This document shows, in pieces, positions 1-20,592 of a stretch of 64,000 nucleotides of DNA; position 1 is the stretch's first letter; each line of letters begins with the position of its first letter. This DNA comes from Penicillus capitatus (taxonomy: Eukaryota; Plantae; Chlorophyta). Made by a program: the position numbers and the translations under genes. The notes below the pieces were generated by a model. That model was given only the letters and a program-made list of their open reading frames with translations. It did not search any database and was not told the origin of the DNA. The stretch lies in contig OZ287716.1 of the NCBI GenBank assembly GCA_965649825.1, positions 81,778 to 145,777 of the forward strand. Reading direction: 5' to 3'.

Positions 1-1291
1 CCTCGCCGTTCACCGAACAACAAGACGTAGTTCTCTCGATATGACACGAGAGCAGCAGATGCTTGAGTTGCATCACATTCCAAGTCCAGGACAGTTCGCT
101 CATATGCGTGACTAGGTGCAGGTTTCTTCAGGTATCGATCGATCATTGGGCGGCGCACGAAGAAAGAGCGAATTCTGATCGCGCGACTTGCGTCAGCAAC
201 CATCTCCACGGTTATACCCCTGTCAAGAGATGCTTGATTTTCGATGCTGCCTTCGAGCATTTTTGCTAAACCAATCTCCTATGCTGATCCGCTTGGCGAT
301 TGTGATGTGAGAAAATGGCATGACCTGTCAGCGCCGTACAGTGATCGTGCATGAGATAAAAGTATGGATGCTTTGGAGACATAGCAATCAACGATGCCAT
401 TGAAAACGTCGACGCCTCGTTAGAACACTGTCTACTGAGGAGTCATCCTACAGTTCCTCTTTCGGCCGAACAACGCGACAAACACAACAAAACCGCATTG
501 GCGAAGAAATGCACAGAGCATTCTTATTAAACGATGACATAGGTGTTGTTACTGTTCAATCTTTCGTCGTCCAGACGTAAAGGGATGATTTCGTCGGCGA
601 CATTTCGATTCACTGGTAGCTACATCATCGTTCGCCTTCCTCCAAAATGCATCCTATTCATCGCAGTGTTAAACTGTTTACTGTTTCGGATTTCTGTCTT
701 TCTTATCATCACTGCGATCGTCCTTCCTTGAATCTAGTGTATACTCAATCTTTATCCACTTCTTTGGCTTTTCAGACTTTTCGGAACCTTCTGCGCCGGA
801 ACTCGTCGATGCACTGCAAAACAGAAAATGGAGTCAGGCATCAAACGGTATGCATACGATCTTACGAAGTGTTTGCAGCGGCGTCCTGAGTGTCCTTGGG
901 TTCACGGAATGCCGGTGTCTGCGTTTCGGTTGGTGGAATCGGAGGGTCCATCAAGCCTGAGAACACACCATTCAAGCCAGGGAAGCAACGCGATGTTCGA
1001 CTTCGTGAGGAAATGGGATGGGCGTACTGACGAGCGCTATGCTGGAAGCTCAACGGCTTTCTGTTCGGTCCTTTGCAGGCTTGCCGAGCCCGACCCAAGA
1101 GTTCATTTATGTCCTTTTCCTGCGTTCCTTGCTGCTGGCCAGGTAACGGCCTATCTTTTAAACCACTGAGGATTTTATCGAATTCTTCTGCAGTATACTG
1201 CGGATTCTCATCGGTGGTACCGCTTCCCGATGGTTTCGGTCCTTCAACAACTGCAGTCTTCTCTTTTTCCAGTGATGGAACGGGAGATACC
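1..1291. repeat. Direct-repeat copy 1 of a segmental duplication (partner 11734-13034); runs off the window start
   Basis: Position 1 aligns to 11734. ORFs 647..889/12381..12623 and 828..1169/12562..12903 translate identically. Homology ends at GGAACGGGAGAT(A/G)CC (~1291 vs ~13034). Confidence 0.97.
678..1291 (-). pseudogene. 5'-truncated duplicate of the last exons of the coiled-coil gene at 12412-16753
   Basis: ORF 862..1296 matches the C-terminal part of ORF 12596..13312 (SPVPSLEKEKT...DAAANTS). The upstream exons are absent from this copy. Confidence 0.85.
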
Positions 1292-1294
1292 ATC

Positions 1295-2993
1295 ATGTAC
1301 AGAGATTATCTAAACTGTGTCCGGACGCCCATGGACTTTGGAACTATCAAAGGAAACATTTCCCAGTACAAGAATCCGACAGAGTTCGAAGCGGATGTGC
1401 GGTTGGTTTTTGAGAACGCAAGGAAGTACAATGCCCCAGGGACAGATGTCAGAGAGATGGCACGTGCATTGGAGGCAAAATTCGAAGAGAAGTGGACGAA
1501 ATCCGTTGTGCCCCGACTGGAGGAGTTGAAAGTCAATGAGATCGAAGATCAGATCGCTTTTAAACAAAGCAAAGCTGACAATTCAACGATGGAGGCCGAG
1601 ACAAGAGTCGACGAATGTTGTCGCCTGCTGCTGAATCGACTCCAGGTCCTGTTGTCTTTTATCCTGATGACAATGATCTTAGAGATCTGCTTGCTATATC
1701 TAGGTACTGTCTGAAGAATTAAAGTCGGTTCAGTGCCTGGCAGCAGCTCAGTGTGTCACTTTGCCCGAGGACGAACGATTGCGATTGGGATGGGAATTGA
1801 CGACGTTGGCGCCAGAGCAGTTCCAACATGCTGTGAATTTAGTTCTGATGCGACATCCAGGATTGGTGGCGACCATGCGAGATAACACAATCGAATTTGA
1901 CATCAACAAAATGGATTGTCTTACTCTAAGACAGCTGCAAGACTACATCCATGACTGCTCAAAAGAGAAGAGCAGGGCAGAGGAACGTGGTGGTCCGCTG
2001 GAAACGCCGCCCGTAAGAAAACGTCGTCGACGCTGGCCGTCGCCTTCACGTAAACACATCTGCCTTTTCACACGATCTCTATCTCACGACCTTCCGCAGG
2101 ACATGTGGACGAAGGTGTCGATCCGTACTGGCCTGTCGAAGGACAAGGCGTTCACTGGCCAAAGGTCGCACTCGGTAATGGTCTGAAGCCCTACGATGCA
2201 GAAGTGGAACCATTCATTCCACCCAGTGCAGAAGAACCTCTGTCTCTACCCTTCTCGTCTGTTTTTATGCATCATCAGCAAAACCTACAGCGTGAATCTG
2301 ATACCCCTCCTGAAAACTCTCCGGTACATATTCAAGTAGAAGACTCTGCGCTGTCTTCGCCGCCTTCGACAGCGGTCTCCACCAACCAGATGCCGATCTT
2401 TCTACCTTTGCCCCGCTCACCGAGGGATGCAGAGACAAATGCGTTTTACGGTGGAGACGCCACTGGTCCATCCGAAATCGTTTTGCCCCCTCCCTATTCT
2501 GTTCTGTCGATGTTGCCTCCGCAGAGCACAGACCTTATGTATCAACAGCAGACATTGCCTGCAACACAAGAGGCCGTTTTGCAACCGATGTCCAACACGC
2601 CTTGTCTCAGTGGTAGGTCACATCTCACTTGTGTTTGTAAGATTTTTGTCCTCTTTAGTTTCGGACATATCTCCTCCCACTGTGTTGGTCCCGACCGCTG
2701 GATTGGCGGCCATTCCGTTGGTCCCGGTATCTCAGCCGACGAGTCAGTTCCCTCCTTTCTTCACGGCAAATATTCGGCCGCCATTTGCAGCGCCGTTGAA
2801 TCCGAGTGCTCCCCTTCCTATATCACCACCTGAGTCTCCTGCCGTTGGACCTGCATCCCATCCATTCATAGCCGGTTTTCCTCCTTCCCCTATTCCGGAG
2901 CCTACAGCTACACTAGAGGCTTTCACTGCTCCAATTTCATCCACTGCGACAACAATGCCAGTCACATCAAGCGGAGATATTCGACTGGGATAA
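1295..2993 (+). CDS. Bromodomain + ET (GTE/BET-family) protein lacking the N-terminal part of the bromodomain; Pro/Ser-rich tail
   Basis: DYLNCVRTPMDFGTIK...EADVRLVFENARKYNAPG is the C-terminal half of a bromodomain. ERLRLGWELTTL...IEFDINKMDCLTLRQLQDYI is an ET domain. Three inferred GT-AG introns (near 1.65-1.70, 2.05-2.10 and 2.61-2.66 kb) keep the frame open to 2993. Confidence 0.85.
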
Positions 2994-3204
2994 GCAGCTT
3001 AAAAGTTGAACATTGTACATAAAAAGGACGTTCGATAGAGGCATAAAGCATTTTCTTTGTTGTTTTCGTTTAAAATCCAAAGTTATAATACAAACATGAG
3101 CTATCCACACGAAAAAATTCATCAAGCGTCGCACTACGGTCGGCGCTACGAATGGCAACAGGAAAAATTACACGGCCCTAAAATGCAACACCGATCGCCG
3201 ACGA

Positions 3205-3244
3205 TTCTCAGATCTCTGCCAGCGTCACGGACGTCATCTGAGAA
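3205..3244. repeat. Short inverted repeat TTCTCAGAT-N22-ATCTGAGAA just left of the satellite
   Basis: 9-bp perfect arms at 3205-3213 and 3236-3244. Confidence 0.6.
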
Positions 3245-3284
3245 ATCGGGATCTCTCCGTGAAGCCCCAGGCTTCCAATCAGAA

Positions 3285-6200
3285 CCAGAGGTCAGGTAGG
3301 ACGCCGCCGCCGCGGCCTCCAGTGGCCGAGAAGGCATCCAGTAGAGACATGAGATAGAGTAGGACGCCCATGACGGCCTTTGCGCCGCCGCCAGACGTCA
3401 GGTAGGACGCCGCCACGACAGACTCGAATGGCCAAGAAGACATCCAGTAGCAGCAGCAGATGGAGTAGGACGCCGCCACGACGGCCTCCAGTGGCCGAGA
3501 AGGCATCCAGTAGAGACATGAGATAGAGTAGGACGCCCATGACGGCCTTTCCGCCGCCGCCAGACGTCAGGTAGGACGCCGCCACGACGGCCTCCAGTGG
3601 CCGAGAAGACATCATCCAGCATCAGCGGGAGATAGAGTAGGACGCCCATGAGGGCCTCCAATGTCGGCATAAGCAGTAGCAGCAGGTGATAGAGTAGGAC
3701 GCCCACGACGGTCTTTGCACCGCCGCCAGACGTCAGGTAGGACGCCGCCACGACGGCCTCCAGTGGCCGAGAAGGCATCCAGTAGAGGCATGAGATAGAG
3801 TAGGACGCCCACGACGGCCTTTGCACCGCCGCCAGACGTCAGGTAGGACGCCGCCACGACGGCCTCCACTGGCCGACAAGGCATCCAGTAGCAGCGAGAG
3901 ATAGAGTAGGACGCCCATGAGGGTCTCCAATGTCGGCATAAGCAGTAGCAGCAGGTGATAGAGTAGGACGCCGCCACGACAGACTCGAATGGCCGAGAAG
4001 GCATCCAGTAGCAGCAGTAGATAGAGTAGGACGCCGCCACGACGGCCTCCAGTGGCCGACAAGGCATCCAGTAGCAGCAGTAGATAGAGTAGGACGCCCC
4101 ACGACGGCGTTTGCGCCGCCTCCAGACGACATGTAGGACGCCGCCACGACGGCCTCCACTAGCCGACAAGGCATCCAGTAGCAGCAGTAGATGGAGTAGG
4201 ACGCCCACGACGGCCTTTGCGCCGCCGCCAGGAGTCTGGTTGGACGCCGCCACGACGGCCTCCAGTGGCCGACAAGGCATCCAGTAGCAGCAGTAGATAG
4301 AGTAGGACGCCGCCACGACGGCCTCCACTAGCCGACAAGGCATCCAGTAGCAGCAGCAGATGGAGTAGGACGCCCATGACGGCCTTTGCGCCGCCGCCAG
4401 GAGTCTGGTTGGACGCCGCCACGACGGCCTCCAGTGGCCGACAAGGCATCCAGTAGCAGCAGTAGATAGAGTAGGACGCCGCCACGACGGCCTCCACTAG
4501 CCGACAAGGCATCCAGTAGCAGCAGCAGATGGAGTAGGACGCCGCCACGACGGCCTCCACTGGCCAAGAAGACATCCAGTAGCAGCAGTAGATAGAGTAG
4601 GACGCCGCCACGACGGCCTCCACTAGCCGACAAGGCATCCAGTAGCAGCAGCAGATGGAGTAGGACGCCCATGACGGCCTTTGCGCCGCCGCCAGGAGTC
4701 TGGTTGGACGCCGCCACGACGGCCTCCACTGGCCGACAAGGCATCCAGTAGCAGCAGTAGATAGAGTAGGACGCCCACGACGGCCTTTGCACGCCGCCAG
4801 ACGACATGTAGGACGCCGCCACGACGGCCTCCACTGGCCGACAAGGCATCCAGTAGCAGCGAGAGATAGAGTAGGACGCCCATGAGGGCCTCCAATGTCG
4901 GCATAAGCAGTAGCAGCAGGTGATAGAGTAGGACGCCCACGACGGTCTTTGCACCGCCGCCAGACGTCAGGTAGGACGCCGCCACGACGGCCTCCAGTGG
5001 CCGAGAAGGCATCCAGTAGAGGCATGAGATAGAGTAGGACGCCCACGACGGCCTTTGCACCGCCGCCAGACGTCAGGTAGGACGCCGCCACGACGGCCTC
5101 CACTGGCCGACAAGGCATCCAGTAGCAGCGAGAGATAGAGTAGGACGCCCATGAGGGTCTCCAATGTCGGCATAAGCAGTAGCAGCAGGTGATAGAGTAG
5201 GACGCCGCCACGACAGACTCGAATGGCCGAGAAGGCATCCAGTAGCAGCAGTAGATAGAGTAGGACGCCGCCACGACGGCCTCCAGTGGCCGACAAGGCA
5301 TCCAGTAGCAGCAGTAGATAGAGTAGGACGCCCCACGACGGCGTTTGCGCCGCCTCCAGACGACATGTAGGACGCCGCCACGACGGCCTCCACTAGCCGA
5401 CAAGGCATCCAGTAGCAGCAGTAGATAGAGTAGGACGCCCACGACGGCGTTTGCGCCGCCTCCAGACGTCATGTAGGACGCCGCCACGACGGCCTCCACT
5501 AGCCGACAAGGCATCCAGTAGCAGCAGTAGATGGAGCAGGACGCCCACGACGGCGTTTGCGCCGCCTCCAGGAGTCAAGTTGGACGCCGCCACGACGGCC
5601 TCCAGTGGCCGACAAGGCATCCAGTAGCAGCGGAGATAGAGTAGGACGCCGCCACGTCGGCCTCCAGTGGCCGACAAGGCATCCAGTAGCAGCAGTAGAT
5701 AGAGTAGGACGCTTATGACGGGCTTTGCGCCGCCGCCAGACGACATGTAGGACGCCGCCACGACGGCCTCCACTAGCCGACAAGGCATCCAGTAGCAGCA
5801 GTAGATAGAGTAGGACGCCCCACGACGGCGTTTGCGCCGCCTCCAGACGACATGTAGGACGCCGCCACGACGGCCTCCACTAGCCGACAAGGCATCCAGT
5901 AGCAGCAGTAGATGGAGCAGGACGCCCACGACGGCGTTTGCGCCGCCTCCAGGAGTCAAGTTGGACGCCGCCACGACGGCCTCCACTAGCCGACAAGGCA
6001 TCCAGTAGCAGCAGTAGATGGAGTAGGACGCCCACGACGGCCTTTGCGCCGCCGCCAGGAGTCTGGTTGGACGCCGCCACGACGGCCTCCACTGGCCGAC
6101 AAGGCATCCAGTAGCAGCGAGAGATAGAGTAGGACGCCCATGAGGGCCTCCAATGTCGGCATAAGCAGTAGCAGCAGGTGATAGAGTAGGACGCCCACGA

Positions 6201-7383
6201 CGGCCTTTGCGCCGCCGCCAGACGTCAGGTAGGACGCCGCCACGACAGACTCGAATGGCCGAGAAGGCATCCAGTAGCAGCAGTAGATAGAGTAGGACGC
6301 CGCCACGACGGCCTCCAGTGGCCGACAAGGCATCCAGTAGCAGCAGTAGATAGAGTAGGACGCCCCACGACGGCGTTTGCGCCGCCTCCAGACGACATGT
6401 AGGACGCCGCCACGACGGCCTCCACTAGCCGACAAGGCATCCAGTAGCAGCAGTAGATGGAGTAGGACGCCCACGACGGCCTTTGCGCCGCCGCCAGGAG
6501 TCTGGTTGGACGCCGCCACGACGGCCTCCAGTGGCCGACAAGGCATCCAGTAGCAGCAGTAGATAGAGTAGGACGCCGCCACGACGGCCTCCACTAGCCG
6601 ACAAGGCATCCAGTAGCAGCAGCAGATGGAGTAGGACGCCCATGACGGCCTTTGCGCCGCCGCCAGGAGTCTGGTTGGACGCCGCCACGACGGCCTCCAG
6701 TGGCCGACAAGGCATCCAGTAGCAGCAGTAGATAGAGTAGGACGCCGCCACGACGGCCTCCACTAGCCGACAAGGCATCCAGTAGCAGCAGCAGATGGAG
6801 TAGGACGCCGCCACGACGGCCTCCACTGGCCAAGAAGACATCCAGTAGCAGCAGTAGATGGAGTAGGACGCCGCCACGACGGCCTCCACTAGCCGACAAG
6901 GCATCCAGTAGCAGCAGTAGATGGAGTAGGACGCCCATGACGGCCTTTGCGCCGCCGCCAGGAGTCTGGTTGGACGCCGCCACGACGGCCTCCAGTGGCC
7001 GACAATGCATCCAGTAGCAGCGGTAGATAGAGTAGGACGCCCATGACGGCCTTTGCGCCGCCGCCAGGAGTCAGGTTGGACGCCGCCACGCCGGCCGCCA
7101 GTGGCCGAGAAGACATCATCCAGTATCAGCGGGAGATAGAGTAGGACGCCCACGACGGCGTTTGCGCCGCCGCCAGGAGTCAGGTTGGACGCCGCCACGC
7201 CGCCCGCCAGTGGCCGAGAAGACATCATCCAGTATCAGCGGGAGATAGAGTAGGACGCCCACGACGGCCTCCACTGGCCGACAAGGCATCCAGTAGCAGC
7301 AGTAGATCGAGTAGGACGCCCACGACGGCCTCCACTGGCCGACAAGGCATCCAGTAGCAGCGGGAGAAAGAGTGAGTACGCCC
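3285..7383. repeat. Modular minisatellite array 1: about 73 copies of core GGACGCC(GC)CACGACGGCC in ~43-66 bp units, with higher-order duplications
   Basis: Manual count of cores. A 63-bp unit (...TCCASTRGCCGACAAGGCATCCAGTAGCAGCAGTAGATRGAGTA) is interleaved with ~43-bp units (...TTTGCGCCGCCGCCAGGAGTCTGGTT and variants) and a TCCAATGTCGGCATAAGC variant. Repeated ORF-track translations and end-points recur at offsets of 1234 and 2266 bp. Confidence 0.97.
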
Positions 7384-7674
7384 GCGGCTGCATCCCGTGA
7401 CTGCCAAAGCGGTAAGTAGAGCTTCCATGACGTAATTCGGCCTCCAATCACGGCGTGACCCCATACAGACCATCCATGGCTGCCATCGGGCCTCCAGCAG
7501 CTGCAAGACATCAGGTGGATCATCTGTCAATGCCTCCAATGACAGTAATACAGCAAAGAGAACATCCATGATGTCTTCCAATGACAGCCAAACAGTACAT
7601 AAATCATCCATCAGAGACGGCCTCCAGCCTCAGCAGCGACAGGAACACATCAGGAAGGTAATCCAGGTCGGCTT

Positions 7675-8283
7675 TTAGCCTCCAATGACAGCAAAGAGCG
7701 AACAGATGATTGAGCACGGCCGCCAGGCCTCCAGTGACAGCAAAGAGCGAACAGATGATTGAGCAGGGCCGCCAGGCCTCCAGTGACAGCAAAGAGCGAA
7801 CAGATGATTGAGCAGGGCCGCCAGGCCTCCAGCGACAGCAAAGAGATAAGTATGATGAATCACGGCCGCCAAGCCTCCAATGACAGCAAAGAGCGAACAG
7901 ATAATTGAGCACGGCTGCCAGGCCTCCAATGACAGCAAAGAGCGAACAGATGATTGAGCACGGCCGCCAGGCCTCCAGTGACAGCAAAGAGATAAGTATG
8001 ATCCATCACGGCCGCCAGGCCTCCAGTGACAGCAAAGAGATAAGTATGATCCATCACGGCCGCCAGGCCTCCAATGACATCAGGGTAAGGAACAGATGAT
8101 CCATCACGGCCGCCAGGCCTCCAGCGACAGCAGGATAGGGAACAGATGATCCAGCACGGCCGCCAGGCCTCCAATGACATCAGGGTAAGGAACAGATGAT
8201 CCAGCACGGCCGCCAGGCCTCCAATGACATCAGGGTAAGGAACAGATGATCCAGCACGGCCGCCAGGCCTCCAATGACAGTCA
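7675..8283. repeat. Minisatellite array 2, 48-50 bp units
   Basis: Units such as GACAGCAAAGAGCGAACAGATGATTGAGCACGGCCGCCAGGCCTCCAAT. They share GGCCTCCA(A/G)T with array 1, and degenerate copies bridge 7384-7675. Confidence 0.95.
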
Positions 8284-8520
8284 ATAATCAGGTAGGATAT
8301 CCAGCACGGTTTCCATCCACCAATCACAACGAGACATCGGATAAGACACGCCAGCCTCCGGGCGGCAAAACAGCAAGTATAGCACAGCAGCCTTCATGTC
8401 AGACACAGCAAATGAGATTCCTACAGCCTTCAGGTAAAAAACAGTTACAGAGCCATCCACAACAAAGCGGAGGTGGAATGGCAGAGAAACGGGTCGGAAG
8501 AAATAAAACAGCCCCTTTTG

Positions 8521-8605
8521 CATCTTTTTATTTTTTTTATTTTTTTGGTTGATTATTTAGTCACACTTCAGAGTGTGACTTTTTTTATTTTTATTATTTA
8601 TTTTT
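8521..8605. other. Perfect palindrome AGTCACACT-TCAG-AGTGTGACT (8559-8580) flanked by (T)nA tracts
   Basis: 9-bp arms with a 4-nt loop. T-rich runs lie on both sides and read as AATAAA/A-rich on the minus strand. Confidence 0.85.
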
Positions 8606-8767
8606 TCTCAGACAAAAAATTGTGAGATGCTTGAGAAGAAAATAGAAATTTTTGTTTTTTTTTTTCAAATTTTTTGTACACCCCCACGAAGACATCTTAA
8701 AAATCTAAACAGACCTGGCACCCCACACAGGCCAATTCTCGATGGAAACCTACAAGACAAACAAATT

Positions 8768-9902
8768 TTAGGAAAGACAAAGACGAAATTTTCTTACGCA
8801 TTGCCCCGACATGAAGAAGAGGCGTTCGGGGATGGCAGGCGAGCAGATTGGAAGGCACTCGCCAGACATAAAAAAAGGACGGGAAGGGAATCCGGACGGT
8901 CTGACAGGAAAAATAGAAGGTCGGGGAGGGATGGGAGGTGGCTGATTAAGGGAGAAGAGGGATGTCCGAATGGGAAAGGGAGGAGGAAGAGCAGGGAGGG
9001 AGAAAAGTAAAGGACGAGAGGGGATTATGGGCGAAGGAGATGCAGGAATAGAAAATACTTGAGGCCGCGGTGGAAACAAAGGAGGTTGGATTTGCGGCAC
9101 AGAGGGTGGGGAAAGGATGGGCTGAGGAATCGATGATGGGGACCACCCCATCTGTGGCGGCTGTGCAGGTTGGGAGGCAGGCTGCGCAGCAGAATGGTGG
9201 TCTGGCGACTGGGCAGACGGCGCGGCTGGAGGCGCAGGAGCAGGGGACCACTCCATGTGTGGCGGGGCTCCAGGCTGGCAGGTTGGCGGCGGAGGGGCTG
9301 GCTGGCAGGTTGGCGGCGGAGGGGCTCCAGGCTGGGTAGGCTCAGAGACGGGCGGAGGCGGCGCATATGACTGGACACGCTGCGGAGGCGGCTGAGCAGC
9401 AGGCTGGCCCTCTTGGGCCAACCGCGCTTGCCTCTCCGCGGCCGAGAGGACCCTGGCCCTCCGCCCGGGCCGAGGCTGTGCGCTTTGGTCCCTATTGGGA
9501 CCAAAGCGCACAGGAGGGGTCTGAGCAGCTACGTGCTCCTGACCCCTCAGTGCGGTTGATTGGGCCTTGAGGTCCCAATACAACCGCACCCTCGCGGCCT
9601 CGTCCATGCCCTGGAAGGCCCTGGGCGGTTGATTGCCCAGGACCTCCCGTAAGGTCACCTGTGCGAAGCTACAGAACACACAGAGGTTAGTGAACCCTAG
9701 AAGAACAGGGCGGCCGCGCGTTCACTGTAGCGCGCAACCGCCATCGTCTAGACTGCAGCTGGACGCTTGCATGTTCGCAGCAATCGTCCAGGCTGCAGTT
9801 GAAGAGCTCCGTAGCGCGCGACTCGTCGAAGCATGGCAACAGCACTCACGGTTTGCCCGGATAGCCGTAATCAGCCTCCGTAAACATGTGTGCGTCGGCC
9901 AT
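8768..9902 (-). CDS. Orphan two-exon Pro/Gln-rich protein (~317 aa)
   Basis: Exon 1 (9902-9850) reads MADAHMFTEADYGYPGKP, with donor GTGAGT at 9849. The acceptor CTAAC...TTCTGTAG at 9669 joins it in frame to ORF 8768..9679. No family recognised. Confidence 0.65.
9476..9513. repeat. Perfect 17-bp-arm hairpin CTGTGCGCTTTGGTCCC-TATT-GGGACCAAAGCGCACAG
   Basis: Arms 9476-9492 and 9497-9513 are exact reverse complements. Confidence 0.95.
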
Positions 9903-10573
9903 CGTCGTGAAAGTCGGTTGTCAAAGAGAGCAGCAAAGATCGCCGGAAGCAGCAGAGAACCCGAAACTCGAGTGCGGAAGGCTTGGCGACAGGACCTTTA
10001 TAGGCCGCCTCGGTTGCTGAGCGCGACCTGCGGACGGCGGCTGGGAACCGTGGCCGTTTGCCGGCGCCTGCATGCGCCGCCGGACAAAGAATCGGCCGCC
10101 AGACGGCCAGAAACGCAGAGTACTGTCGTCGGGATGCGCGTCGCGAAAGAGAGAGCGTTTCCAGTAGCTTAGCGAAGTGTTTTACAGGAGACATTTCTTA
10201 GAGTTTGTCCGTGTGCACCGCTCTGAGTGTAACGCGCATGCGTTCTCTGCGGATGTTCCGACGCGGATCTCCGAACGGCCAACCGCTCGAGTCAGCTCCG
10301 CGTTGCCTGAGCAGAGGAACGCGGCGGGCGTTCTCTCTTGCAGAAGCGGCAAGGACTCTACGTCTGGACGGCCGTCTGTTTCGGGCGCCTCCGTCGCAAA
10401 CGCCGTCGAGAGAGCGATCTGCGCGGTGTAACGCGAATTGGTTTGAGAAGTTGGCGTGGGCCCTAACTCCCTCGAACATGGAAGGCCGAACCGAACGACG
10501 CCTTCTGCGAGAACCAGACGGCCACGGAGCCGTCGTCTGAGTTCATGCTCGCGCACAGCGTCGAGGGAGCGTT

Positions 10574-11580
10574 TTGGAGGACGCCGTTCGCTGCGATCGA
10601 CGCAGTCGGTCGCTTTCTATGACAGCTGTGCATGACTGCTGCTTTGTCTGCCAAGCCAGCCATTGGGACTGTCTCGAGGATCACGTGTGCGACGGCACTG
10701 TCGATCGAGGTCGGGGCCAGTTGCGATCCGATGCCACCGCCTACCTTCTCTCCGGCGTATTCCACTGTGCAGAGCGCACCAAAGAGGCAGATTGGCATTG
10801 GGACGGGCAGGTATGCTGCTGCATTCTCAGTGGAGTCGTCCATGCCGTTTCGTTCTAGTGTCCTGCGAGTTCTGATGTTATGAGGGCTGCGAAGGAGATC
10901 GTCCGTCATCCGTTCGGAGACCGCTTAGCGAAAACTTCTGCAATGAAAGACGAATAACTACCGCCGAGTGTTCTGCGCGCGTGGGGGTTCGGGGACGATG
11001 TCGTCAGTGCTGTCCACGTGCTCTTGGACGGTAAGTGCACTGTGGAATGCATGAACTAACGTCATGCCTGCTCTTGGCTCTGCCGTTTGGACTGTGATTC
11101 GGCATTCCTCGCAGAACACCGAGATGCCTGTCGACGTCAGCGCGTTGGATCGAGACCAAGGAATGCATTCGCATAACAAAGCGTCCTCAAAACAACGGTG
11201 CGAGAGAACGTACAATAAGTGATGCGCACTGCAGACGGCAAAACGATTTCAGAAAGAGAGAGTGTTTGTTGGGGTCTAAAAGAATGCGACTGTCCACTCC
11301 TCGATGTTTCGGCTGGCAAATCGAGAAGAGACAGAAGGGGATGAATCCAATCGTGGATTCAGTTCCTACCTTTCCACTGCATCTACGCGAGCATCCTGCA
11401 CAGAGAACTGATGGATGTGGATTTGATGCGCGAACGCGTATCGCGTATCGCGATTCTGCTTTGCCACCACAGTGCGTCCTTCTAGACAGTGGCAGTTGCT
11501 CTCTCGTCGGTTGCATCGTCTTCTTCGTTAACTTCAGTGATCTGTCAATACAGCCATCCGGGACTGTGCTGTACGCTTGA
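10574..11580 (+). pseudogene. Possible degenerate spliced gene relic (Cys/His-rich exon, in-frame TAA)
   Basis: CAG|GTATGC...TTCTAG joins ORF 10574 in frame to CPASSDVMRAAKEIVRH...MKDE*LPPSVLRAWGFG. A further GTAAGT donor and a CTCGCAG acceptor follow. No recognisable family. Confidence 0.25.
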
Positions 11581-11733
11581 GCATTATATGCTTTGCATAT
11601 GTGCTTTTCAGTTTAATTTGAGCTGTGCTTGGGTTCTTTCATCTATGCTTATTGCTTATTGCTCAGAAGCAGCATCTCAGAGCAAACATCTAAATCTATC
11701 GTTGTACAACAGACGGTCGGCGAGGAAAGATGA

Positions 11734-13034
11734 CCTCGCCGTTCACCAAACAACAAGACGTAGTTCTCTCGATATGACACGACAGCAACGGATGCCTGAG
11801 TTGCATCACATTCCAAGTCCAGGACAGTTCGCTCATATGCGTGACTAGGTGCAGGTTTCTTCAGGTATTGATCGATCATTGGGCGGCGCACGAAGAAAGA
11901 GCGAATTCTGAACCGCGACTTGCGTCAGCAACCATCGCCACAGTTATACCCTTGTCAAGAGATGCTTGATTTTCGATGCTGCCTTCGAGCATTTTTGCTA
12001 AACCAATCTCCTATGCTGATCCGCTTGGCGATTGTGATGTGAGAAAATGGCATGACCTGTCAGCGCCGTACAGTGATCGTGCTGGTGAGATAAAAGTATG
12101 GATGCTTTGGAGACATAGCAATCAACGATGCCATTGAAAACGTCGACGCCTCGTCAGAACACTGTCTACTGAGGAGTCATCCTACAGTTCCTCTTTCGGC
12201 TGAACAACGCGACAAACACAACAAAACCGTATCGGCGAAGAAATGCACAGAGCATTCTTATTAAACGATGACAGAGGTGCTGTTACTGTTCAATCTTTCA
12301 TCGTCCAGACGTAAAGGGATGATTTCGTCGGCGACATTTCGATTCACTGGTAGCTACATCATCGTTCGCCTTCCTCCAAAATGCATCCTATTCATCGCAG
12401 TGTTAAACTGTTTACTGTTTCGGATTTCTGTCTTTCTTATCATCACTGCGATCGTCCTTCCTTGAATCTAGTGTATACTCAATCTTTATCCACTTCTTTG
12501 GCTTTTCAGACTTTTCGGAACCTTCTGCGCCGGAACTCGTCGATGCACTGCAAAACAGAAAATGGAGTCAGGCATCAAACGGTATGCATACGATCTTACG
12601 AAGTGTTTGCAGCGGCGTCCTGAGTGTCCTTGGGTTCACGGAATGCCGGTGTCTGCGTTTCGGTTGGTGGAATCGGAGGGTCCATCAAGCCTGAGAACAC
12701 ACCATTCAAGCCAGGGAAGCAACGCGATGTTCGACTTCGTGAGGAAATGGGATGGGCGTACTGACGAGCGCTATGCTGGAAGCTCAACGGCTTTCTGTTC
12801 GGTCCTTTGCAGGCTTGCCGAGCCCGACCCAAGAGTTCATTTATGTCCTTTTCCTGCGTTCCTTGCTGCTGGCCAGGTAACGGCCTATCTTTTAAACCAC
12901 TGAGGATTTTATCGAATTCTTCTGTAGTATACTGCGGATTCTCATCGGCGGTACCGCTTCCCGATGGTTTCGGTCCTTCAGCGACTGCAGTCTTCTCAGT
13001 CTTCTCTTTTTCTAGCGAAGGAACGGGAGATGCC
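11734..13034. repeat. Direct-repeat copy 2 (native locus, overlapping the coiled-coil gene 3' end)
   Basis: See copy 1. This copy continues seamlessly into the intact gene and has a 9-bp expansion (EKTEKT). Confidence 0.97.
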
Positions 13035-17962: not shown

Positions 17963-18577
17963 TTAATAGTCCTCTACTCCCAGAATGTCCAAAGCTACAT
18001 AGGGATCTCTGCTTCTCCACAGCACTGGATAAGTTTTCCTTTCTGGACAGTGTCGAAGGAAGTCATCTGGGATTCCTGGATTTGCATAGACGTTTAAGCT
18101 ACTCTCACGATTTGTGCGACGTTCTCTTCGAATTTGTAAACCACAACGCTGACACTCTGTTCCCATCCAGATCAATCCACCACGTTTGCCGTCAAAGTCC
18201 GTTCGGAGACGGGGAAAATCTTCGAGGTCCATGCGACGGGGGTCGAATCCAACGAAGCGATGGGGAGTGCGATAATCGGGAAGCTCTTTTGGCGGCGGTG
18301 GCGGCTTCTCTTCGTCGACAACGTCCGACGAGATAGCGTCCTCGACTGGATCGTCGACCGCTTCGAGTTCTGCCTCGAGTTGAGCGAAATCCTCTAGCGT
18401 CTCGGGCGAAAGCAAATCATTGTCGGAGTCGGATGCCGTCTCGATCTTTGAGAAGTGTTTTCGTCGATCGGCCGATTCGGCTTTGGGACGCGTCGTGTAC
18501 CGTCGGCATCGCGTTCGCAGCAGGGGAGAACGGAGGGGAGAGGTGAAGGATAAGGAGATGCGCGAGCAGGTCTGCAT
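17963..18577 (-). CDS. Hypothetical protein with a transit-peptide-like N-terminus; 3' exon structure unresolved
   Basis: MQTCSRISLSFTSPLRSPLLRTRCRR is followed by an acidic segment and ELPDYRTPHRFVGFDPRR. Confidence 0.45.
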   Translation of the reverse strand: MQTCSRISLSFTSPLRSPLLRTRCRRYTTRPKAESADRRKHFSKIETASDSDNDLLSPETLEDFAQLEAELEAVDDPVEDAISSDVVDEEKPPPPPKELPDYRTPHRFVGFDPRRMDLEDFPRLRTDFDGKRGGLIWMGTECQRCGLQIRRERRTNRESSLNVYANPGIPDDFLRHCPERKTYPVLWRSRDPYVALDILGVEDY

Positions 18578-18940
18578 CGATCGCGTTGTCACAATGATTG
18601 TTCGATCCGTCGGCCTTTGTCGCGCCCTTTTCAGTCGTCCGCTCGCGACGACACGGCACGTCCGTTGCTTGACATCGCGCGAACCGGAGTACGGTTCATC
18701 TGAGAAACTTATTTCCGTTTCGGACGTCGTGAAAGAAGTGCGCAATGGAAAGAGGGAGAGAATACAAATCGGATGGGTCTAGGCCGCGGAACTGGGCGAG
18801 AATTTTGTCTTTACGGATAACAGCGACGAACCGGTTTTCAAATACGAAGAGGCGCTAAGAGGAGATCCTGAAAAGAGTACCCAATACACAACGACCCTCG
18901 CAAATCTCGTGCTCGTGTGGATGCAATAGAAGACAAAAGT

Positions 18941-19450
18941 ATGACGGAGCAGAAGACGCCTTCTGTGAGCTCAACGGCATTGGATGTCACGAGTGCCTAC
19001 GCCCCTGAGCAAGGTATACCTCTGCCCGTGATATAGGGGAAAGAAAGCAACATCGCTGGCGATTAGGGTTCAAAGAGATCACGGTGGATGAACTGAAAGC
19101 GAAATTGGAAAGAAAGGAATTTGCATTGCTGTTGGACGTGCGAGGGCCTTCGGAATTTGAGTCGGGACATGTTCCCGGAGCGCGTAACATTCCGCTGGGG
19201 GAGTTAACCGGTGACTACGTCGATGCCTCGGATTTGAAGGAGTACAAAGAAAAGGCGATCGCCGTCATCTGCGGAATCGGCAAACGATCCGCACAGGCGA
19301 CTGTTCGATTGAACAAGGTACAAGTGGAATCTGCTCGCTCATCAGACACATGCAAGTCACATCATTTAGGTATTGGGATTCACTGATGTGACAAGTGTGG
19401 CTGCTGGAACGAAGGAATGGATCGCGAAAGGATACGAGATCGAAAAGTGA
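18941..19450 (+). CDS. Single-domain rhodanese/sulfurtransferase
   Basis: LLLDVRGPSEFESGHVPGARNIP and VICGIGKRS; a spliced last exon reads VLGFTDVTSVAAGTKEWIAKGYEIEK*. Confidence 0.88.
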
Positions 19451-19484
19451 TCCAAGGAATGACAGATCGTCCATTCTACAGACC

Positions 19485-20592
19485 TCATAGACATTTTCTC
19501 ACTTTTCTTGAACTCATGAGTCGGCCAAGCAGAATACCGGCAGCAACGCTAACATTTAAGCTATCCAGTAGCGGATTCTGCGATGCTGTCTCGGACAGAA
19601 TCTGCACAAACTGGCTACACTGCTCGCGGATGCTCTGACGGAGACCCCGGGATTCGTTTCCTCGAGCAGTGAACCACATCGACCCACTGTGCTCGTGCAA
19701 TGAAGGTCTTACCCATGACAAGAACGGTCGGTGCGTCGACGGTGCACTGTTCGAAGGAAATGGCATCGTCTGTGACGTCTGAACCGAGAACGTGCCATCC
19801 ACATCCCCGTGCTTGACTCAGAAGTCTTTGCATCCGAGAGGACGCATGTACAGGAAACGTCTCCATCGCTCCCGAGCTGACTTTGCTGACAGTCGGAGAC
19901 AACGGAGCCGAATTCTTCTGTGCCACGACCACGCCATTCACTCCCAAGAACGCAGCTGTGCGTAGCATCGCACCTAAGTTATGCTGCATTCCACACACAG
20001 TCGGCACTCCTCTTCTGTCCGACCTATCTCTCACCGGATCATACACTTCGTCAAGTGCTAGCCAGACAGGATGCGGGTCCTGACCATCTGCATCTGGCAG
20101 ACTCTGCAGTAATTCAAAATTGAGAGGCGAGCAGTCGAGCAAGAATCCCTGATGCACAGGTCGCTGTATGCTGATGGTTTGAGCTGCCACCCACGACGAA
20201 CTTGGTGGACATGTCCTTGAGCCATCATATTGAGATCGTGCTTGGAGTGATGCTGGATCTCAATTCCTCGTTCCCTCGCTTGGCGTATGCCATTAGATAT
20301 CAATCGCCGGTCTTTACGCCGAGACAGGTCTATCTCGTCTTGAATGCAGAGTTTGTAAATCTCTCTCCTGAGCGAAAGGCGAAGCCCATCCAGTAGCCAG
20401 TCTCTTAGCAAAGAGAGGGCACAGATCCTGCCTTTTGGCTTCGAGAGCTGCGAAGACAGGAGCCACACCAAACAGCACATCCCCATTCCATTCTCGTTTC
20501 AGACTCCAGTTCGACATAGATCGGGCGCCACCCGCTCTACGGTGTGATTGGAATCTCTGTGTCGCCGCCACGACTCCTCGGATCCGAGTCAT
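19485..20592 (-). CDS. MRM1: SpoU/TrmH-family 2'-O-ribose rRNA methyltransferase, MRM1-like, organellar
   Basis: VWLALDEVYDP|HNLGAMLRTAAFLG, TVLVMG|NESRGLR and DSLNVSVAAGILL are SpoU motifs 1-3. Includes a GC-AG intron at 20368-20431. Confidence 0.88.

Follow-up and report, generated by a model that had tools for sequence, protein, structure and literature searches.

A probable interspersed variant-repeat minisatellite in a duplicated gene module in the green alga Penicillus capitatus

The window analysed here is a 64,000-nt stretch of the Penicillus capitatus assembly GCA_965649825.1 (contig OZ287716.1, positions 81,778 to 145,777 of the forward strand). Close to its left end, a repeat array of about 4 kb and a smaller second array take up the space where two genes converge with their 3' ends, a BET gene on the plus strand and a proline-rich gene on the minus strand. 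From the sequence we consider the array to be probably (a probability of roughly 0.6) a non-coding, GC-rich, strand-asymmetric minisatellite with interspersed variant repeats. Its head-to-tail units of 42-70 nt run over 4.1 kb, variant units are interspersed, and alleles differ in the number and order of units, as is usual for minisatellites. The array is a feature of an ordinary kind, yet it is unusual for a genome so poor in repeats, and the remaining 55 kb of the window contain no tandem repeat other than one 27-nt doublet.

An original prediction, made from the letters alone, had described about 73 units built on a GGACGCC core, with three interchangeable unit families in irregular order. 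Splitting the sequence at GGACGC recovered exactly 73 head-to-tail units between 3299 and 7383, and the three families correspond to the length classes of 63, 43 and 57 nt (families A, B and C; feature table), with a single further unit of 70 nt. There are 38 distinct unit sequences, and A, B and C units alternate without a regular order. Tandem Repeats Finder reported periods of 63, 106 (A+B) and 169 (A+A+B). A 22-mer from the family A core has 41 matches at ≤3 mismatches, all within 3299-7208, where 0 are expected by chance. The core itself is shared, as predicted, but is longer than the 7 nt proposed: the three families have in common ~20 nt, GGACGCC(G)CCACGACGGCCT, and one unit reads GGACGCT. 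These initial ~20 nt vary far less than the remainder of the units.

The larger-scale organization also agrees with what had been read from the sequence. The repeats noticed at offsets of 1234 and 2266 bp are exact blocks of 564 and 631 bp, respectively, and the plus strand is indeed depleted in T, with 1301 G, 1296 C, 1001 A and 501 T. This amounts to 12.2% T and 63% GC in the array, versus 24% T and ~51% GC in the whole window. The extent needs correction: the main array does occupy the interval first proposed for it, but the repeat region runs on past 7383 to 8310, first as degenerate units and then as the second array. Both of these contain the motif CCTCCA(A/G)TGAC.

Table 1. Positions and properties of the repeats, neighbouring genes and duplicated segments in the window
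Feature	Position	Strand	Details
Main array	3285-7383	.	73 units of families A, B and C, each starting GGACGCC(G)CCACGACGGCCT
Family A			63 nt (n=37); variants of 66 nt (n=3), 62 nt (n=1) and 61 nt (n=1)
Family B			43 nt (n=20); variants of 44 nt (n=4) and 42 nt (n=1)
Family C			57 nt (n=5)
Higher-order block	3629-4192	.	exact copy at 4863-5426; 564 bp, offset 1234
Higher-order block	3963-4593	.	exact copy at 6229-6859; 631 bp, offset 2266
Variable half of main array	3285-5262	.	unit order and number differ from L003 (35 vs 30 units)
Stable half of main array	5263-7383	.	38 units, same in order and sequence as in L003
Degenerate old units	7384-7677	.	42-58 nt; CCTCCA..GAC and CATCCA motifs kept
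Second array	7678-8310	.	48/49/50-nt units in 3 subfamilies; super-period ~147 nt
BET gene (bromodomain + ET), 3' part	1289-2993	+	converges on the array; stop codon 2991-2993
Proline-rich gene	8705-9721	-	last intron 8797-8750 (GTAAGA..TGTAG); stop codon 8707-8705
Conserved block	8448-8482	-	35 nt, GCCATTCCACC..TTGTTGTGG.TGGCTCTG; kept in the window, L007 and both L008 copies; directly upstream of the arrays in the minus-strand direction
Hairpin	8560-8579	-	GTCACACT-CTGA-AGTGTGAC; in the A-rich spacer; kept in paralogous modules
R1	1-1288	+	copy of 11734-13031, 98% identical; marks the 11.7-kb tandem duplication junction
R2	11734-13031	+	right end of the duplicated segment, within the minus-strand coiled-coil gene

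The array is polymorphic. Among independent assemblies of the same species it has 73 units here, 68 in L003 (a 572-kb ENA metagenome contig) and ~80 in L007, with flanks that are 97-100% identical. The comparison with L003 is the most informative: there are 0 differences from the window between 5263 and 12000 and only 15 out to 14530, whereas left of the array the two are 97.6% identical (2.4% divergence). Because divergence falls from 2.4% on the left to none on the right, a switch of haplotype (or paralogue) lies inside the array. This fits homologous exchange, and an assembly join would look identical. Exact copies (≥70 nt) of right-half sequence account for 1140 of the 1978 nt in the variable left half, which indicates very recent internal duplication, and the L003 allele contains scrambled units, 49-120 nt in length. 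Among the two or three alleles compared, only the left half has changed, a polarity that a neighbouring recombination hotspot might leave but that paralogue exchange or an assembly join could mimic. L007 and L009, which come from one sample, have the same A and B families. Most L007 units form regular 105-nt dimers (A62+B43), the L009 array is shorter, and in both a 51-nt array derived from a neighbouring segment stands in place of the 49-nt array.

The array is also restricted to a lineage. L004 represents a more distant relative, with 80% amino acid identity in a fragment of the BET bromodomain. Its syntenic site has the BET, coiled-coil and DOMON genes in order, with no tandem repeat between them. 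Thus, the ~9 kb between the BET and coiled-coil genes are specific to the lineage of the window. The sequence of another relative (L001, ~87% identical) ends ~1.3 kb past the shared sequence, short of the array site. Positions 1-1312 of L001, upstream of the shared region, match nothing in the window or in L004, so gene order at the locus differs there too. A scan of JGI metagenomes with the A core returned one chance match, in a bacterial contig of 69% GC. A viral origin was considered and rejected, as neither the A nor the B core has a match in IMG/VR.

The array belongs to a module in which a GC-rich region is followed by the proline-rich gene, next by the hairpin and conserved block, and last by the arrays. 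Two tandem copies of this module, with a unit of ~6.9 kb, stand ~100 kb away on the L003 contig (L008), so that family arrays occur at 363-384 kb and at 471-492 kb of this 572-kb contig, and a further copy lies in another arrangement beside COG4 (L009). Accordingly, the repeat family is neither unique nor present once per chromosome, the latter being the copy number that the original prediction would have taken as a sign of a centromere. Related arrays also follow the other sampled copies of the proline-rich gene. Each module copy has amplified its own unit, of 42, 49-50, 51, 63 or 147 nt, and the module copies differ from one another by 2-15%.

In the window itself, the module lies within a segment that has been duplicated in tandem. 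The junction at 1285-1289 reads ...GGGAGAT/ACC... and rests on a 4-nt microhomology, AGAT, at which the coiled-coil gene is fused with mid-bromodomain sequence of the BET gene. The same junction occurs in L007; L003 instead continues into an intact BET gene. Given that the duplicated 11.7 kb contain the array, a second copy should sit just upstream of the window. We also considered whether 1-1263 and 11734-12997 could be the long terminal repeats (LTRs) of a retrotransposon, and rejected this because the junction is a microhomology join of two host genes and L003 has the full BET gene. In L009 (1-5783), the module has the BET gene on one side and COG4 on the other, replacing the coiled-coil and DOMON genes, and positions 1-1398 of L009 are similar to the sequence that separates the two modules of L008. 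Around the module, the region is structurally polymorphic.

How might such an array have grown? We suggest that all units, whether A, B, C, 48-50-nt or degenerate, could descend from one ~42-50-nt motif containing CCTCCARTG, and that its variants would have been amplified at different times through replication slippage and unequal exchange or gene conversion. Staggered amplification of this kind would produce an old degenerate centre with young arrays on both sides, as well as the exact 564- and 631-bp duplications. At a larger scale, a module of several kilobases has been duplicated in tandem and to other sites, and each copy has amplified its own unit variant. The array changes rapidly between haplotypes and is probably a substrate for homologous exchange between the duplicated segments. 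It may thus be a nearly neutral minisatellite carried along with a duplicating gene module, perhaps destabilising it.

Several observations weigh against this interpretation. The array family stayed beside the proline-rich gene through at least five duplications, which could reflect function rather than linkage, and a neutral array of 5 kb is unexpected in a window otherwise free of tandem repeats. In addition, the motif xEAVxDxLPD is found in one minus-strand frame, in the less derived units and across paralogues, and several unit lengths can be divided by three (63, 57 and 66 nt here; 105, 51, 42 and 147 nt in sister arrays). It is conceivable that the array arose from a coding repeat of 14 aa or has a residual role as one.

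It is possible, although unlikely, that the array functions in cis and that this function is linked to the proline-rich gene module. It could be a termination or boundary zone between the converging genes, a chromatin or small-RNA array, or a set of candidate sites for a protein that recognizes the 20-nt core. All sampled copies of the proline-rich gene have a family array on their 3' side, after the conserved hairpin and 35-nt block, and both the restrained variation of the core and the scarcity of other repeats in the genome would suit such a role. The conserved spacer block and hairpins are possibly a 3'-end signal. However, unit sequence, length and number turn over freely (42, 49, 51, 63 and 147 nt), one allele has scrambled units, and duplication of the whole module explains why array and gene occur together. 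No structured-RNA signal emerged either: Rfam gave no match in the window even at E≤1, there are no tRNA genes in the window, and the units fold no better than shuffled sequence. On these grounds a structured RNA or a small nucleolar RNA cluster was rejected.

A related and somewhat more doubtful proposal is that the array family is a functional partner of the module, with the ~20-nt core as a putative cis platform for 3'-end formation or termination, for a chromatin boundary or for recombination. The core would then be kept at every gene copy while the rest of the unit turns over. Should this be correct, the array would promote unequal exchange and so drive copy-number change and diversification of the proline-rich family.

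Do the arrays encode a protein? We regard a minus-strand gene, present or recent, as improbable. Such a gene would specify a secreted repetitive protein starting at an ATG at 8397 (MKAAVLYLLFC...), possibly with short introns, and the copy in the window might be a frame-broken pseudogene of a 14-aa (42-nt) WRPxEAVxDDLPDx repeat. Unit lengths of 42, 51, 57, 63, 66, 105 and 147 nt are divisible by three, an in-frame EAVxDxLPD is common to the window, L007 and L008, and the minus strand is A-poor and mostly free of stop codons. Moreover, introns in this DNA (45-58 nt) are about as long as a unit, and were each A unit spliced out as an intron, with an exon of 57 nt around every B unit, the 43-nt B unit would keep the frame.

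The frames themselves argue against coding. The longest open reading frame (ORF) of the array has 451 aa, on the minus strand, and its repeat frame changes at each B unit; the plus strand has no ORF ≥100 aa. Because the 43-nt B unit shifts the frame, minus-strand ORFs in the window and in L007 (up to 1060 aa) pass through three different repeat peptides. Although 63, 57 and 66 nt are divisible by three, the set made up of 43 (n=20), 44, 42, 61 and 62 nt and the 48/49/50-nt class is not uniformly so. Length variants of 1 nt are common (61/62/63 and 42/43/44 in the main array, 48/49/50 in the second array) and would break any frame. The 22 variant sites of the B units show no clear excess of synonymous change, with 9/22 synonymous in the best frame versus 25% expected, and 6/22 versus 31% expected in the frame of the spliced-exon model with A units as introns. 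The splice sites that this model needs are without the T-rich tract of real introns.

Comparison among loci points the same way. The frame from the putative ATG at 8397 is not kept among paralogues, which differ by 1-nt indels, and L008a and L009 do not have this ATG. The coding sequence of the proline-rich gene ends at 8705 in all paralogues, and the arrays are situated beyond that 3' end, not within the coding part. In L008, a sister array (18021-20195) repeats a 147-nt unit 14.8 times at 99% identity; one of its strands has an ORF of 870 aa and the other an ORF of 725 aa, so open frames in such arrays carry no meaning. An exhaustive phmmer search of 1.84 billion representative proteins returned only 9 matches, all of them 58-249-aa ORF fragments of similar arrays, and no annotated protein from any organism.

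Two variants of the coding idea were rejected. A non-standard genetic code (TAG as Gln, with CAG TAG CAG read as poly-Q) is incompatible with clear genes that end in TAA or TAG and with a helicase ORF of 948 aa under the standard code. There is no support for a plus-strand gene that would begin at the ATG at 3098 and use the B units for 39-nt exons and the A and C units for introns starting at GTAGGA: 7/8 haplotype differences in its first "exon" (ORF 3098-3293) change the amino acid, one creates a stop in L007, and the A units do not have a T-rich 3' tract. A practical consequence is that the A-poor strand of arrays like this yields long false ORFs. Public metagenome protein sets already list ORFs of such arrays as proteins (P0121, P0131-P0139).

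An internal repeat of a mobile or self-duplicating element is very unlikely. The element would span ~7-9 kb (the GC-rich region, the proline-rich gene and the arrays) inserted between the BET and coiled-coil genes. The module does occur at no fewer than two loci and in tandem, its GC content is 57-64% versus ~48% in the flanks, and it is absent from the L004 syntenic site. However, homology between copies ends at different window positions (11127, 11422 and 11968), terminal repeats and a target-site duplication were not identified, and the one resolved junction is the plain microhomology join of two host genes described above. Against both such an element and the suggested element-internal iterons, a search of 1-13.5 kb gave no domain of the Rep, transposase, integrase or reverse-transcriptase kind. 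The units, at 43-63 nt, are also longer than iterons, which are repeats of about 17-22 nt.

The suggestion of a centromeric or kinetochore-associated satellite, which would suit a tandem array with higher-order repeats that evolves rapidly between relatives, is the least credible of all: at 4 kb (5 kb with the second array) the array is no large gene-poor domain but sits between genes, with the BET stop ~290 nt before its start and the proline-rich gene stop ~1.3 kb past its end, it is GC-rich, duplicated 11.7 kb apart, accompanied by family arrays ~100 kb apart on one contig and missing from the syntenic site of a related species. The green-algal centromeres mapped so far are CENH3-bound and built of transposable elements, ZeppL/LINE-1 in Chlamydomonas and LTR plus LINE (long interspersed nuclear element) sequences in Chlorella (PMC11005252; 10.1101/2025.03.28.645958).

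The setting of the minisatellite is eukaryotic nuclear DNA that encodes an Upf1/Sen1-type helicase plus proteins with LOTUS, BSD and DOMON domains. The best named match of the helicase is in Caulerpa lentillifera (60% aa identity), followed by Ostreobium (42%) and trebouxiophytes (38-45%), which places the host among siphonous ulvophytes near Bryopsidales. An exact look-up of the helicase of the window itself gave no record. Introns read by eye are 45-58 nt long (1647-1704, 2051-2100, 2614-2658 and 8750-8797), a size close to that of the repeat units. The original prediction spoke of intergenic gaps of ~50 nt, but at this locus it is the introns that have such a length. Their 5' sites are GTCCTG, GTAAAC, GTAGGT and GTAAGA, one of them similar to GTAGGA, which marks the start of each unit.

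Copies of the proline-rich family were found at 8360-9244 and 16003-17052 in L008 and at 10523-11668 in L007, besides the minus-strand copy in the window (8705-9721). The family has no Pfam match. A conserved last intron and a short last exon with the stop codon occur in every paralogue. Copies hardly vary in the N-terminal ~100 aa (..FCSFAQVTLREVLGNQPPRAF..RVRLYWDLKAQSTALRGQEHVAAQTPP..) and at the C-terminus, and they differ by 15-30% in the proline-rich middle and adjoining DNA. The A-rich spacer that separates the stop codon of the gene from the arrays has one or two CACAC/GTGTG hairpins (8560-8579 and 8606-8627) that are kept across paralogous modules with differing loop sequences. The GC-rich block of the module (~9400-11970, 60-63% GC) is 82-91% conserved between copies, and within it the plus strand carries a conserved Arg-rich ORF-like stretch (9633-10537) without a Pfam match.

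To our knowledge, there is almost no information on nuclear repeats in siphonous green algae, and this locus provides a well-documented case of how a complex minisatellite is born, grows by nesting and comes to differ between haplotypes. It also flags an unstable region, with an 11.7-kb tandem duplication and rearranged module copies, in which assembly is difficult. The main points of note are that its duplications are nested and that it is constantly paired with a gene family that evolves rapidly. A functional link to the proline-rich gene, if borne out, would add a new example of a gene family and a repeat array acting in concert.

So, which known repeats does the array resemble? Like the transposable-element-based centromeres of green algae it is repetitive and evolves rapidly, but it is without transposable-element content and its family occupies several places on one contig. 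As in primate alpha satellite, monomer variants are combined into larger blocks that are repeated almost exactly; unlike alpha satellite, the array is hundreds of times smaller, lies between genes, has irregular two-copy blocks in place of a regular higher-order period and gives no sign of centromere function. The duplicated segment invites comparison with D4Z4-like gene-containing macrosatellites, or tandem segmental duplications, in that a unit of several kilobases with a gene and internal repeats stands in tandem (11.7 kb here; ~6.9 kb in L008), but only a few copies have been seen, these diverge by 2-15%, and a simple microhomology accounts for the single junction that was resolved.

The closest parallels are the human loci MS32/D1S8, MS31 and CEB1, which are GC-rich hypervariable minisatellites with interspersed variant repeats, the likeness being one of description. 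The Penicillus array differs from them in that its families vary in length (43, 57 and 63 nt) beyond point variants, in its exact nested blocks of 0.5-0.6 kb, in being one of a family of arrays that accompanies a multi-copy gene module and in its host, a compact green-algal genome with few other repeats. Nonetheless, it shares with them head-to-tail units of tens of nucleotides in an array of a few kilobases, a GC-rich and strongly strand-asymmetric composition, irregularly interspersed variant units, and alleles that differ in the number and order of units, with change mostly in one half of the array.

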